DNA from: Paramoeba atlantica
Taxonomy: Eukaryota > Protista > Discosea
Assembly: GCA_977017575.1 (NCBI GenBank)
Contig: CDRNVI010000149.1
Location: 372,001 to 436,000 of the forward strand
Length of the DNA stretch: 64,000 bases
Reading direction: 5' to 3'
Positions 32,201 through 37,539 of the stretch are shown here, piece after piece. The first letter of the stretch is position 1, and every line of letters begins with the position of its first letter. The notes under the pieces were generated by a model. It was not told where the DNA came from and did no database searches. It saw nothing but the letters and a program-made list of their open reading frames with translations. The position numbers were made by a program, and so were the translations under genes.

Positions 32201-33754
32201 TCTGAACTCGATATTGTGTCGATGGATCATATCTTGGATTCTTAGTTTACAACCATTTAGGACATGGAGTTGGGTTTCTGACTGCCCGCAGAGAGGACAC
32301 TTCCCATCACCCTTCTGTTGTGTAAAAACATAGTAGGATTTTGTTGGAAGTTGTTGCAGGTAGGCTTTCAACCAGAATCGGAGGTAGTGATTGTTGGGGT
32401 TCCATCGCTTTCGAGTGGTACTGTTAGAGTGTCCACCAACTTTCCAGCTTCTCAGGATTTGCCCTTGAACTTTTAATTCCTCAACGTGTTTGAGGATTTT
32501 ATTGTCCATCATCTTCTGAATCTTATCAACATCGAGATGCTCGAGTGCTTGGGTGTTCTCTGGGAAGAATTTACGAGCAATTTCGTGGGCAACTGTCCAA
32601 AAGCATCGCGCTCGGTCGAATGGGATGTCAGGTTTACCAATAAAGTTCTGCTGCTGGCCTCTTGCTTGTGCAGAGTCAAGTAGAGAGTCTTCAATGATGC
32701 TGACTGCTTTTTGGTCATATTCTTTGGACATCAGGTAGTTGAATCGTCTTGCTTGAAGGGAATAATACATCTTCCTGATGTTTGGGAGAGCCAAGCCACC
32801 ATTGCTGAAGGCAATGGTGAGCATTTCGATGTTGGTGTTGTGGGGGAGTCTGAACCAGGACCTGACTGAGTCATTGATGAGGAGCTGTATTTGGTCAACA
32901 TGGCCAAGGTTCGTCTTTTCATTGAGCAAGACATAGGTACATGAGCTTGCAACCCACTGGGAGAGGGCGACTATCTTGTAACGAAGAGGGAGATTCGCCG
33001 CAGTTAGAAGATCTAGTCGATTTTTGACCTTCTCGATGAGTTTTTCGATTGTTGTGCTCGATTTTGGTTTGTCATTGAAGAAGCTTCCAAGGTAGTGAGT
33101 GTCCTCTGTTTCACCTCTCTTGATGACTTCAACAGGTGATCCATCGATCTTCACAGTCCAGTCATCATGTTGTTGGATGTCTCCTTTGAAGGAGTGTTTG
33201 ATGAGGGCGCATTTGGAGGGGACAAGCTTCAGGCAAAGCCACTTCAAGAATTGTTCGAGCAGTTTGAGGGTGTCAAGGAGCATGTTTCGAGAGCCTGTAT
33301 TAAAGCACATATCATCACAGAAACCCAGTGATGGTATGACACTTTTCTGAGTAATCATCTGATATCCAATTTTACTTTTGTTGAGGAGTCGCCAGACAGG
33401 TTCAAGACAGAGGTTGAATATAATTCCACTCAGGGGATCTCCTTGTTTCACACCTCGAGATTGTGGGACATTGTTTTTTGTTTTTTCATGCGAGAAGATC
33501 ATGACGCCAGCTTTCATAATTCCCCAGATCAGGACACAAATCTTCTTTGGGAGGCCCAGGCCAAATAGGATGGTGATCATTTGCTTGTATTCAACAGCAC
33601 CAAAGGCGTTTTGGACATCAACAAACAGGCTTAGGAACTCGTTGGAGGACCGGTGTCGCGAGATGTTGTCTTTGGCCGCTTGAATCATTGAAAGATTGAG
33701 CATTGTCCCGTTCAGATTTGTGTATCCTCGTTGCTCATCGCTCCATATCTTGTT
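32153..33754 (-). CDS. Reverse transcriptase (from domain 2) with CCHC zinc knuckle
   Basis: EQRGY, FVDVQNAFG, GVKQGDPLS, FCDD, YLG, GGLAL, CPLCGQSETQLHVLNGC, RHN. The ORF-track N-terminus (33755-33877) is transposon TIR sequence. Confidence 0.92.
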   Translation of the reverse strand, partial: NKIWSDEQRGYTNLNGTMLNLSMIQAAKDNISRHRSSNEFLSLFVDVQNAFGAVEYKQMITILFGLGLPKKICVLIWGIMKAGVMIFSHEKTKNNVPQSRGVKQGDPLSGIIFNLCLEPVWRLLNKSKIGYQMITQKSVIPSLGFCDDMCFNTGSRNMLLDTLKLLEQFLKWLCLKLVPSKCALIKHSFKGDIQQHDDWTVKIDGSPVEVIKRGETEDTHYLGSFFNDKPKSSTTIEKLIEKVKNRLDLLTAANLPLRYKIVALSQWVASSCTYVLLNEKTNLGHVDQIQLLINDSVRSWFRLPHNTNIEMLTIAFSNGGLALPNIRKMYYSLQARRFNYLMSKEYDQKAVSIIEDSLLDSAQARGQQQNFIGKPDIPFDRARCFWTVAHEIARKFFPENTQALEHLDVDKIQKMMDNKILKHVEELKVQGQILRSWKVGGHSNSTTRKRWNPNNHYLRFWLKAYLQQLPTKSYYVFTQQKGDGKCPLCGQSETQLHVLNGCKLRIQDMIHRHNIEFRMSSSLLNVCILMISF

Positions 33755-34223
33755 GGGTACAGGCAGCAAAGTTGACAGTTGCGGTTGAGAAAAAGAAGTA
33801 TTTGATGATGTCATCTTTATCCATAATAAGAGTTGCTGAAAAGTTGCTGGCACAATTTGATTTATTCCTACTTCCACAAGAAAAATGAATGAAATAGACC
33901 AGACCTTATGATATGAGCAGGCGAAAAGTTGTTTTCAAAAGGACTCTTTCAAAGCCACAAAAAACACTTTGAAGCACAATTTAATTTAGGGTCCTGAAAA
34001 TAAAATTTATTCTTTTCAAAGGGGACAATTTTTTTTTCTTTTTTGGTGAAAAAAAATAGAAAACTAAATCCCGTGAATTTTTCTTGGAAAAGTTTTCTTT
34101 CTGTTTTCTTCTTTCTCTCTTTTCTCTCTTTCTTGTCTTTTCTCTCTTTTCTTTGTCTCTTTCTTTTTTCTGTTTGAAATTTTCATTCTTTTTGGAAAGT
34201 TGTAGAAACACAGAAGTTTCACG

Positions 34224-35192
34224 ATGAGTAACAAAGAGGATGAAGTTTCAAACCGAAAAAGAGGATCATTGAAAACACCAAGAGATCGAGTGGTCTTTAC
34301 CAAGTCAGAGGAAGATTTGCAACGGGAAACTGCTGATCGTTGTTATATCCACAACAAGAATGTGTATGTTGAGGTTCAGACTCGAGATGGAAAAGTGAAT
34401 CGAGCTCACTTTGTAAAACAGTTTTTTTCTGTGAAAGAAATGGAGATGCTCCACGAAACTCTTCATTCTTGCGATTATTGGAAAAGAAAAGAGGACAAAC
34501 GTGGAGATCGTCCTGAAACTATCATGGGAGTGTGGCCTGCTCGAGGCCATTGTAACCCTGGGGATCCAACTTATCCAGCAGGATTTGGAGGGAAATATGA
34601 AGATAAGCTACAATATCCAATATTGACTCCAGTTTTGGAGAGACTTGGAGAAAAGGCAACTTTGTTGGTGAAAGAGAAACGACCGGATATCTACAACCTT
34701 TTGAAGGGCGAGAACCAATTATGTTCAAATTTTGGCTTGTTTCATTTATTTCTCTCCCCTCTTGGATTCAGTTTGTTTCACAAGGACTCATTTGATTATG
34801 TTGCATTTATTTTTGGAGTCCATGTGAACCCAAATTCGACTGGAGGAGCTCTTGAAATTGGAGGATCTAAGAGAGCATTCAATATTAGAGTTGGAGATGT
34901 TTTGATGTTGGACTCTGATGCACTTTGGCATGGGAGTCGAGACTATCAGGGTGATGAAGACCCTTTCTTTCCTCATGAAGATGATCGTATGGTTGGAATC
35001 TTTGTTCTTCACCGAACCTTTTTAAAGTTGCGTGGTGTGGAGTGGGATACAATGTTGCGTGAAGATTTTGGAAGTCGAACCATCCCGAATGTGAAGGAAC
35101 CACCAAAAAAAAAAAAAAGAGAATGTCACCTGCAGAAAAGAAGCAAAGAAAGAAGGAAAATAAAAAATAAAAAACTTTTATTTAAAAAATAA
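34224..35192 (+). CDS. TET/JBP-like 2-oxoglutarate-Fe(II) dioxygenase
   Basis: FHKDSFD (HxD), GGALEI, GDVLMLDSDALWHGS (distal His), DRMVGIFV (2OG-binding Arg); spacing like protist TET/JBP enzymes; basic C-terminus. Confidence 0.8.
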   Translation: MSNKEDEVSNRKRGSLKTPRDRVVFTKSEEDLQRETADRCYIHNKNVYVEVQTRDGKVNRAHFVKQFFSVKEMEMLHETLHSCDYWKRKEDKRGDRPETIMGVWPARGHCNPGDPTYPAGFGGKYEDKLQYPILTPVLERLGEKATLLVKEKRPDIYNLLKGENQLCSNFGLFHLFLSPLGFSLFHKDSFDYVAFIFGVHVNPNSTGGALEIGGSKRAFNIRVGDVLMLDSDALWHGSRDYQGDEDPFFPHEDDRMVGIFVLHRTFLKLRGVEWDTMLREDFGSRTIPNVKEPPKKKKRECHLQKRSKERRKIKNKKLLFKK

Positions 35193-35699
35193 ATCTTTGT
35201 TCTTCTTCAAACTTCTTTTGTATAATTGATTCAAAATAAATGGAGAACTTGGAAGAAAAAAAAAGAATAAAAAGAGAATAATGACTTGTGCAGAAAAGAA
35301 GGAAAGATAAAAAAAAATTCTCAAAAATAAAAACTTTTCTTTCATTTCATTCATTAGAATTCATGTGAAGCGAACCACTGAATCTTTCTTGACTCACTCC
35401 AAGTTTCACTTCCCTCAACAGGAATTGTCATTGGGGAACGTTTTCTCTTTCGAGGAGGAGAATCATCAGGAGAATCAGGAGCATCAGATGAACCAAGGGA
35501 ACCAGATGAAGATGAAGATGAAGAAGAGGAAGATGATGAAGAGGAAGGCGGAGGTACAACTGCTTCGATCGAACAATCAAAGTCATTATGGGGAGGATTG
35601 AGAAATTCTCTTGTTTCCAAAACATCTTTTTTTTTGCTTGAATCCTCCTTTTCCTTTTATTTATTGTACTAGTCTAGAATAATAACATTATTATTTTAT

Positions 35700-36834
35700 T
35701 TTAAAAAAAAATCATTCAAAAATGAAAAATAAAGAAAAAACCTTTCTTCCGAGAGAAATTGAGAGATTTTTTTCCAACAAGTGTTTTGTTGTATCTTTCC
35801 TGTCCACTTCTTCTGAAAAAAGAAGTTGTTCCTCGAAAACAATCTCATTTGTATGTTCTTCTTCTTTGGGTGGGGGCACCAGAACAGTTTCTAAAATTGA
35901 AAAATATCGACTAAGGATGTCAACAACTGTTGCAGCATTGGAGTATGTTTGACCCCGAAAAAGAGTTTCTTTCAGGTATCAATTGAACCTCTCAATCAAA
36001 TTATTCGTTTTTCCTCCAATCCATTGTGACAAACGAGGAATTATCCATTTCTCCATATACTCAAGCCTAAAAACAAAAAATAAAATATAAATTTTACTTT
36101 ACACACTTGTTTCATTTTTCAAAGGAAAAAAAAAAGAATAAAATAAATCAAAATCCAAACCAAAGCTTTCCTTTTGGACAAGTAACAGCAATTTGAACCC
36201 ATACATTTTCTGCTTGTTCTCATCTTTTTGTTCTTTCATTTCCTTCAATACCCCAAGATAAAAAGAATAAGTTTCTTTCGGAACCCCAAGGGCTTTTAAC
36301 TTGTCCTTAGCATTCATGATCATATGGAAGTAACATAACTTCCATTCAGACTCCTCCCACATTACTTTTCCTATTAAAACAAAACAAATCAATAAAAGTA
36401 AAAAAAGAAAATAATTGTCATTCAAATAATCAACCTGCATTTCCAATACCAAACTCCATATCAGTTAAAATAGAACAATCATTCAATTCCAACCCAATAT
36501 ATTTGAGGTCAGCAAACCACCGGAGATAGGTGAATTCAGTTTTTCGATTTGTTAATAAACAAGATAGAGGACAAAAATTTGTTCCATGTATTTTATCTTT
36601 TGTATCCTCTAACATGAAAAAGAATTATCAAAAAAATGAAAATGAATTAAACTTTTCTTTTCAAATGGAAGATAACAAACCTCTCAGGGGAACACCAAGA
36701 ATCATCAGTTGTAGAGAGGGGGATAATTTAAAAACACCATCAATGAAAAATTCTTTCATATCTGGTTTTACATAATTGGCAATTAGGATCTTCGAACCAA
36801 GTTCAATGAAGACAGAAAGCTGATTGTCTTCCCC
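35700..36834 (-). pseudogene. Intron-containing MULE transposase, decayed
   Basis: Exons 36834-36681 (FFIDGVFK..QLMI), 36608-36435 (PLSCLLTNRKT..Y...ILTDME), 36370-36161 (LCYFH) with GT-AG introns. A later exon reads TNNLIERFN*YLK, with an in-frame TGA. Confidence 0.82.
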
Positions 36835-37105
36835 CTGAGATTAGAAGCGGCGGGGAAAAAAGAAGAAGAGAGAGCAACGGAAAAAATAAAAAAAAGAATT
36901 TTGGAATGAATTAAAAATCAATTTTCTTTTTTTTGACGACTTCAAAACAACTCTTATTATCTAGCCATCAAAGTCTCAAAAAAAGTTTTTTCTTCCTGAC
37001 AAAAAGAATTGCGTTGTTTTTGTGTTGTTTTAAAAGGATAAGGGTTGATGAAAAGTTGAAGCAACTTTCGAACAACAGCAACTATCAACTTTGCTGCCTG
37101 TACCC

Positions 37106-37382
37106 GTTCAAAACGATGGACACCAGCGTTGGGTTTTAGCGCTTCAGGGAGAACCTTGACTTTTTCACTCTGACTCAGGTTAAACCGGGTGTTTAGTTTT
37201 TCCAGTTTCTTTTTGTACCTAGCATGATAACATTTCACTGAATTAATCGATCGATCTTTAAAATAAAGTTTTTGAAGGAGAGAGGGTGTGATGGATGGTT
37301 TTTCCAAAACAATCTTCTCATAGAGCTGCGTCTCGTCCTGGGTCCACCTTTTCCGAGATCTGCCATTACCGCTGGTTGTCAT
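37106..37382 (-). CDS. Myb/SANT-like N-terminal domain of the R2-like element
   Basis: RKRWTQDETQLYEKIVLEKP...FKDRSINSVKCYHARY. Confidence 0.7.
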
Positions 37383-37481
37383 ATGGGAAAGTCCGCGAGT
37401 TGCCTCGTTGTCTCCGCTCCTGAGGGGTGATAGGTGACAATCAATGATGATGTTGGAAAACGGAAAGGAACGTGAAACCCA

Positions 37482-37514
<33 letters not shown>

Positions 37515-37539
37515 ACGTGTTCGATCCACGTTTTTGGCA
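37482..37539 (+). pseudogene. 3' part of the split tRNA-Phe(GAA)
   Basis: TTGGGAGAGCG-TCAGA-CTGAAGA-TCTGA-AGGTC-ACGTG-TTCGATC-CACGT-TTTTGGCA followed by a T-run. Confidence 0.9.

Follow-up and report, generated by a model that had tools for sequence, protein, structure and literature searches.

A predicted TET/JBP-type dioxygenase gene as candidate anti-silencing cargo of a shortened Mutator-like transposon in Paramoeba atlantica

When a transposon carries a gene for a TET/JBP-type dioxygenase, does the enzyme protect the element from silencing by its host, or does the gene only travel along? This question is raised by an element at positions 33755-37105 of the window, a 64,000-nucleotide stretch of the genome of the amoebozoan Paramoeba atlantica (contig CDRNVI010000149.1, positions 372,001 to 436,000). 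An earlier description made from the DNA letters alone (here called the sequence-only reading) had taken the element for a Mutator-type transposon in which a decayed transposase gene and a dioxygenase gene converge, and had proposed the dioxygenase as anti-silencing cargo. Our analysis favors, with a probability of about 0.6, a shortened copy of a terminal inverted repeat (TIR) transposon from a Mutator-like DDE family with 8- to 9-bp target-site duplications, whose convergent TET/JBP-type cargo would counter cytosine-directed silencing. The features of the element are collected in Table 1.

The identity of the cargo was examined first at the level of its open reading frame (ORF). The uninterrupted plus-strand ORF of 322 amino acids described by the sequence-only reading was confirmed; it consists of a catalytic domain at about residues 12 to 275 and a lysine-rich tail. 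A word-indexed homologue search with the ORF returned only the ORF's own cluster; the family came to light with an exhaustive HMMER search, which yielded 99 homologues, almost exclusively from environmental assemblies. When 37 of these were aligned, H186, D188, and H236 were invariant, R255 and D191 were conserved in at least 90%, and several glycines were nearly invariant, in agreement with the HxD...H...R triad noticed earlier. The homologues that retained the catalytic residues were just 24 to 49% identical.

The AlphaFold model of the ORF product showed a predicted local distance difference test score (pLDDT) of 89.6 and a predicted template modeling score (pTM) of 0.84. In a Foldseek comparison with the PDB, the top 25 matches were all TET/JBP enzymes (CcTet, CMD1, NgTet1, and TET2) with E values of 1e-10 to 3e-7, and ALKBH3 followed at 1e-6. 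When 48,161 representative chains were searched without a filter and independently of Foldseek, the four TET/JBP representatives again came first; WelO5 scored 10.9. The strong structural matches were all 2-oxoglutarate (2OG) oxygenases, which identifies the predicted fold as a double-stranded beta-helix. The TET/JBP structures ranked ahead of AlkB, prolyl hydroxylase, TauD, and similar enzymes, and this predicted fold, together with the active-site residues, bears out the TET/JBP-like dioxygenase of the sequence-only reading. The comparison of a predicted structure with Naegleria TET1 (NgTet1), which that reading had suggested, likewise returned NgTet1 among the top TET/JBP matches.

The ORF could instead encode a 2OG oxygenase that does not act on nucleic acids, such as an enzyme of the TauD/TfdA type, the WelO5 halogenase type, or the prolyl hydroxylase type. 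In its favor, eight homologues touched the TauD profile and five touched WelO5 (best E value, 2.9e-7), in matches that covered just about 37 residues around the second histidine, and gamma-butyrobetaine dioxygenase came first in a profile search of PDB sequences (E value, 0.004). The latter candidate was rejected as a local motif match of only 31 residues, and a phmmer search of the ORF against PDB sequences gave only noise. The fold comparison largely refutes an enzyme of this kind, and we consider it very improbable.

The active site also bears on the base that the enzyme would act on. In a profile alignment, the HKDSFD motif of the ORF product aligned to HKDNLD of NgTet1 (chain 4lt5), with D191 as the last residue of the motif, three positions past the metal ligand D188. 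The N4-reading position (Asp234 in NgTet1, Asn1387 in TET2, and Asp350 in CMD1) hydrogen-bonds the N4 amine of 5-methylcytosine (5mC), and Asp or Asn at this position disfavors thymine and N6-methyladenine (6mA) (PMC7854593, PMC11040006). On the basis of the fold ranking and the N4-reading motif, the ORF product is therefore classed as a divergent TET/JBP-fold protein, as far as a predicted structure can place it. Cytosine is the likely base acted on by the predicted enzyme, judging from the conserved motif. An enzyme with the TET/JBP fold might nevertheless have another job, namely, thymine hydroxylation to 5-hydroxymethyluracil (5hmU), glyceryl transfer as in CMD1, or a reaction on RNA, and would then make a mark and not erase one. 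We regard such a job as unlikely, since Asp at the N4-reading position is reported to disfavor thymine and no glycosyltransferase or other partner is encoded in the element.

The 90%-identity cluster of the ORF had 15 members on about ten contigs of ENA assembly ERZ24900291. The same cluster included two P. atlantica MMETSP0151 transcripts, one of them with a complete ORF of 315 amino acids, thereby indicating that the gene is transcribed and that its host is P. atlantica or a very close relative. Near the 3' end of the ORF, a run of A (35103-35116) was 14 nt long in the window copy and 15 or 16 nt long in the other copies and the transcript. Because of this difference, the last 20 to 25 residues are frame-shifted, and the tail of the window copy differs from that of the transcript. 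Both versions of the tail were Lys/Arg-rich and lay outside the catalytic domain.

Next, the family to which the element belongs was delimited. The 33-nt inverted ends of the sequence-only reading proved to be real and unique in the window. The family-wide left end is probably at 33756 and reads GGTACAGG, as the same end sequence was found in five other copies of the element. The 21-nt end sequence had just two sites in the window, which were the two ends of the element (0 expected). With the element start at GGTACAGG, perfect 9-bp duplications flanked the copies L003 (ATTCTTTGG) and L005 (TCTTTTGGG), and an 8-bp duplication with one C/T mismatch flanked L004. The GTT duplication reported earlier did not hold up in this comparison: GTT adjoins both ends of the window copy, but the duplication of the family is 8 to 9 bp long and the flanks of the window copy are not contiguous host DNA. 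A 3-bp target duplication, which would have suggested a Harbinger or CACTA element, was ruled out on these two grounds. The window copy had no 8- to 9-bp duplication at its flanks, because these flanks have been rearranged.

The family was found at six loci, which were the window locus (L002 is the same locus, with identical flanks), L001, L003, L004, L005, and L006. L003, L004, and L005 were complete copies of a longer form of about 4.8 kb, L006 extended past the end of its contig, and L001 was cut on its left side. The sequence-only reading had asked whether the dioxygenase gene is always inside the TIRs, and this was the case in every copy with both ends visible (the window copy, L003, L004, and L005); the partial copies L001 and L006 had the ORF as well.

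Compared with the 4.8-kb form, the window copy lacked about 1.4 kb, in which the transposase has its start and its N-terminal exons. L001 lay in different flanking DNA, had the same deletion junction, and was 99.9% identical to the window copy. The identical junction at two loci indicates that the short form moved after the deletion arose, and since it lacks the transposase N-terminus, it must have used the transposase of another copy. On this comparison of copies, the element at 33755-37105 is a non-autonomous internal-deletion derivative of a TIR transposon family of about 4.8 kb. The whole window copy differed from the consensus by only 0.4%.

The two genes were confirmed to be convergent, with a spliced transposase gene on the minus strand. 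Its three GT-AG introns (36680-36609, 72 nt; 36434-36371, 64 nt; and 36160-36067, 94 nt) had phases that join the exons correctly. The earlier description of this gene as a decayed MULE transposase was borne out in part. The gene is decayed, but it is not merely so, because the deletion of about 1.4 kb took its N-terminal exons, and the MULE label received no support from hidden Markov models (HMMs). The motifs found across the copies were FIDGVF with the first D, ILTDMEF with the second D about 70 residues on, LCYFH, and KTNNLIERFNRYLK with the E. The catalytic E in KTNNLIERFNRYLK (TNNLIERFN) lay about 110 residues past the second D, a spacing that was read by eye across spliced exons. Mutator transposases have the catalytic layout D...D...C(2)H...E, in which the E stands in a motif of the N-x-x-E-x-x-N type about 110 residues after the second D; this layout is said to come from work by Yuan and Wessler in 2011. 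The target-site duplications of Mutator elements and MULEs are 8 to 11 bp long, typically 9 bp, a range into which the duplications of L003 and L005 (9 bp) and L004 (8 bp, with one mismatch) fall. Judging from the 9-bp duplications and the catalytic motifs recognized by inspection, the element is probably Mutator-like.

The carrier might belong to another DDE superfamily with 8- to 9-bp duplications (hAT, P, Zisupton/KDZ, or Merlin), and several sequence searches leave room for this explanation. A Pfam scan of 11 transposase pieces, 8 of them at E values up to 10, gave no match to MULE (PF10551), the search suggested by the sequence-only reading, to Transposase_mut (PF00872), or to any other model, the domain being split by introns and all copies being decayed. 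A homologue search with a 173-aa transposase piece returned only a fragment from the same genome, and PDB sequence searches with two transposase pieces gave noise only. Another superfamily is nevertheless unlikely in view of the 9-bp duplications of two copies and the residue spacing, with about 70 residues from FIDG to TDxE, then CxxH, and about 110 residues to the E of TNNLIERFN, which is the Mutator layout. In addition, the C-terminal dimerisation region of hAT and the C(2)C/H(3-4)H motif pair were both absent from the transposase.

The copies also recorded the mutational pressure on the family. Among the ORF copies, there were 86 distinct substitutions, comprising 81 C>T or G>A changes (94%), 2 T>C or A>G changes, and 3 transversions. 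The 22 CpGs of the ORF contain 44 C or G positions, of which 36 had changed in one copy or more. In the 3 kb that the copies share, 42 CpGs were counted in the window copy, 8 to 17 in each of L003 to L006, and 37 in the shorter stretch of L001; the window copy had kept its CpGs. L003 to L006 each carried 23 to 31 CpG transitions, 41 to 53 other C>T changes, and 4 to 9 changes of all other kinds. The one-sided C>T spectrum therefore indicates strong cytosine-directed mutation pressure on these repeats, with CpG as the most affected context and other contexts affected too. The CpG decay of host repeats that the sequence-only reading had noted was recovered as strong C>T change and CpG loss in the older copies. 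Compared with window positions 33755-36824, L003 to L006 had lost 60 to 80% of CpGs, and non-CpG C>T changes were about 10 times as frequent as all other types of change.

This decay fits the deamination of 5mC or a process like repeat-induced point mutation (RIP). A cytosine-directed pressure would plausibly give a TET enzyme an obvious use, without proving that use. In the mechanism that we propose, the host would methylate the cytosines in its repeats or otherwise target them. The predicted enzyme would flip out 5mC, read the cytosine N4 via D191, and oxidise the methyl group. With this oxidation, the silencing mark would be erased or changed, both on the element itself and, in trans, on other copies. 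The element would remain active in transcription and transposition, and its deamination-driven decay would slow. The short form, which has kept the dioxygenase, has to borrow its transposase from a full copy. The anti-silencing function of the cargo is what we infer.

Several results weigh against this proposal. The Pfam scan of the window ORF, suggested by the sequence-only reading as a search for Tet_JBP (PF12851), gave no match to Tet_JBP or to any other family at E values up to 1. Ten of the 37 homologues touched Tet_JBP, with a best score of 17.9 bits compared to a gathering score of 34.9; these matches spanned about 107 residues, and the best covered profile positions 31 to 145 of 164. 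The carrier likewise lacks a Pfam match to a Mutator-type transposase, as described above. Non-CpG C>T changes were also frequent, and the host process could be a deaminase or a RIP-like system and not plain 5mC. The old copies had decayed despite carrying the dioxygenase gene. The ORF was intact in the window copy, 5'-truncated in L001, split by a 1.8-kb insertion in L003, and interrupted by stops or frameshifts in L004, L005, and L006, and an intact ORF was present in just one or two of the six copies. With few exceptions, the differences between the ORF copies were C>T changes that arose after insertion, and the active lineages were separated by too few substitutions for a dN/dS comparison. 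These differences look like neutral decay after insertion, with no selection on the cargo demonstrated within the family.

The last two observations are also what would be seen if the dioxygenase gene were a passenger like those of Pack-MULEs, that is, a captured host or foreign gene that is transcribed and gives the element no help. The ORF is broken in most copies, and that of the window copy is intact mainly because the whole copy is young. A passenger would less readily explain why the gene is full-length and why the catalytic residues are all preserved in such divergent homologues. Members of the same dioxygenase family adjoin at least three other kinds of transposase, repeating the fungal pattern (PMC12730594). 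In addition, the deletion derivative retained the ORF while losing the transposase. We therefore consider a passenger improbable and anti-silencing cargo the better reading of the locus.

Several known systems are close to the element described here. VANDAL (MuDR) elements of Arabidopsis carry VANC anti-silencing proteins. As in VANDAL, an extra gene is carried by a Mutator-type element; that of VANDAL counteracts the methylation silencing of its own family, and the Paramoeba gene would do so by analogy. Unlike a TET-type enzyme, VANC is a sequence-specific DNA-binding protein, which is not an enzyme and has an unrelated fold. We know of no report of NgTet1 as transposon cargo. TET genes were reportedly found in KDZ and Plavaka transposons of fungi by Iyer and coworkers in 2014. 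NgTet1 of Naegleria gruberi (PDB 4lt5, 5cg8, and 5cg9) shared only 15% sequence identity with the ORF product, and its F295, which stacks as an aromatic residue under the base, appears, by spacing, to be replaced by an aliphatic residue.

TET-carrying DNA transposons have been assigned to 11 lineages, all of them fungal and none of them MuDR (Kojima 2025, PMC12730594). The Paramoeba element resembles these in being a cut-and-paste element with TIRs and target duplications in which a TET/JBP gene stands beside the transposase, in having a dioxygenase whose clade is spread over several transposon superfamilies, and in its proposed role, the escape from methylation or C>T hypermutation. It differs from them in its amoebozoan host, in its Mutator-like carrier, a superfamily absent from the fungal list, and in a dioxygenase too divergent for the Pfam Tet_JBP model. 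The fungal ORFs were described as mostly intact, in contrast to the Paramoeba ORF.

In Chlamydomonas, CMD1 is encoded in the TIR element DNA-1_cRei, and other TET/JBP genes are found in Helitron2 families (Craig et al., bioRxiv 10.1101/2022.06.16.496473). Like the Paramoeba element, DNA-1_cRei is a non-fungal TIR element that contains a TET/JBP gene; it has 8-bp duplications, and a large internal deletion is likewise found in one of its copies. In contrast, DNA-1_cRei is 18.4 kb long and has four genes and no recognisable transposase, whereas the Paramoeba element is 3.4 to 4.8 kb long and has two genes. The CMD1 enzyme of DNA-1_cRei makes 5-glyceryl-methylcytosine (5gmC) using vitamin C. The pairing of a Mutator-type transposon with a TET enzyme, which the sequence-only reading took to be unreported, is thus new only in part: TET/JBP genes inside DNA transposons have been published (PMC12730594; bioRxiv 10.1101/2022.06.16.496473), but a literature search of incomplete coverage found no Mutator-type TET carrier and no amoebozoan host.

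Relatives of the dioxygenase were located beside transposases of other kinds. The closest homologue, P0016 (302 aa, 49% identical), lay in an environmental contig on the same strand as an intact 563-aa piggyBac transposase (DDE_Tnp_1_7; E value, 4.7e-32) and 150 bp after it (both in L011:1144-3897). P0060 was encoded on an environmental contig of 5.7 kb (L012:1-5732), whose ends were 22-nt inverted repeats with GGCCCTGTTCG after a terminal TTA. This contig also held a PHD-finger gene and a convergent gene with a weak match to the Harbinger-type DDE_Tnp_4, and its layout suggests a complete element of the Harbinger-like type with a TET-type gene as cargo. In L009 (3-4493), both P0017 and a 1037-aa gene were bracketed by 29-nt inverted repeats that start with TATGG, the end motif of IS3EU (Kojima 2025, PMC12730594). 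P0116 faced a convergent 801-aa protein (L007:3894-6302) with SDLK, CPFC, CTLH, and HLLMCH motifs. This protein had no Pfam match, and its motifs, compared by eye, are reminiscent of the C(2)C/H(3-4)H pattern in transposases of the CACTA/Transib type. The homologues beside piggyBac, Harbinger-like, and IS3EU-like transposases indicate that the clade has repeatedly been tied to different transposases, as in fungi. Among the environmental contigs, tblastn and tblastx detected no relative of the Paramoeba transposase region, and a search of metagenome contigs for related loci, made with a narrow alignment, returned nothing.

A broader proposal, which we put forward as tentative and rather doubtful, is that, in amoebozoans and marine protists related to them, a distinct TET/JBP clade invisible to Pfam moves between no fewer than four or five superfamilies of DNA transposons (Mutator-like, piggyBac, Harbinger-like, IS3EU-like, and CMC-like). 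The clade would act there as a counter-defense against repeat-targeted C>T hypermutation or methylation, and dioxygenase-only derivatives would persist by helping their family in trans. If this were true, dioxygenase-only deletion derivatives would be "helper" elements and not mere parasites of the autonomous copy.

TET/JBP-carrying transposons, documented in fungi and Chlamydomonas, are the clearest case of mobile DNA that encodes an eraser of a host silencing mark. If this arrangement is also present in an amoebozoan, on a Mutator-like carrier, the capture of TET genes by transposons would be a strategy that recurs across eukaryotes, and the environmental relatives beside piggyBac, Harbinger-like, and IS3EU-like transposases also point toward recurrent capture. 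The young, CpG-rich and the old, CpG-depleted copies provide a natural contrast in which a protective effect of the enzyme against the methylation-driven decay of DNA could be sought. In addition, so small (322 aa) and very divergent a TET could serve comparative enzymology.

Table 1. Positions of the features of the P. atlantica element in the window
Feature	Position	Strand	Basis or remark
GTT at left end	33752..33754 (partner, 37106-37108)		Chance match, not a target-site duplication
Left terminal inverted repeat	33755..33787		Arms of 33 nt, 94% complementary to 37073-37105
Gene for 322-aa predicted TET/JBP-fold 2OG/Fe(II) dioxygenase, intronless	34224..35192	+	Uninterrupted ORF, structure model, homologues, transcript
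HKDSFD motif: Fe(II) ligands H186 and D188; D191	34779..34796	+	Conserved in 37 homologues
Second Fe(II) ligand H236 (34929-34931) and 2OG-binding R255 (34986-34988)	34929..34988	+	
Transposase gene remnant, DDE type, Mutator-like by motifs	35354..36816	-	Six-frame reading, GT-AG junctions, comparison with L003 to L006
Transposase exon remnant	36816-36681	-	
Transposase exon	36608-36435	-	
Transposase exon, frameshifted	36370-36161	-	
Transposase exon	From 36066	-	In-frame stop after RFN
Transposase Ser/acidic C-terminal exon	Ends at stop codon 35354-35356	-	
Junction of internal deletion of about 1.4 kb	36816..36817		Long copies carry about 1,400 extra bases here; read base by base
Right terminal inverted repeat	37073..37105		Pairs with left arm at 31 of 33 positions

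The DNA around the window copy was examined for the rearrangement of its flanks. Both flanks (33355-33754 and 37106-37529) resemble pieces of a non-LTR (R2-like) retroelement, yet they are not adjacent parts of it. On the left flank, the reverse transcriptase of the host retroelement resumes at WSDEQRG. Three homologues (43 to 49% identical) had about 180 conserved residues directly before WSDEQRG, including the motifs APGWDG, VRPI, and NLYK, and none of these three motifs was present in the 141 codons of the right flank. About 120 to 180 codons with N-terminal motifs of the reverse transcriptase were absent at the junction of the element with the host retroelement. Since the flanks are not contiguous, one of them was lost or exchanged after insertion; read from these motifs, a deletion or exchange accompanied or followed the insertion of the window copy.

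Some minor differences were found between the two forms of the element. The right 290 bp were about 80% identical between the short and the long form, which was first taken as a sign of a different subfamily; most of the difference is explained by a subterminal repeat of about 57 bp, of which the long form has one more unit near its right end (L004:5085-5400) than the short form has (window 36900-37072). AAAGTTG-like motifs recur near both ends and are candidate binding sites for the transposase. The 1.8-kb insertion in the ORF of L003 (L003:6145-7968), which is flanked by a 17-bp duplication of the ORF, codes for a protein of 550 aa with a match to RVT_3 (RNase H-like).

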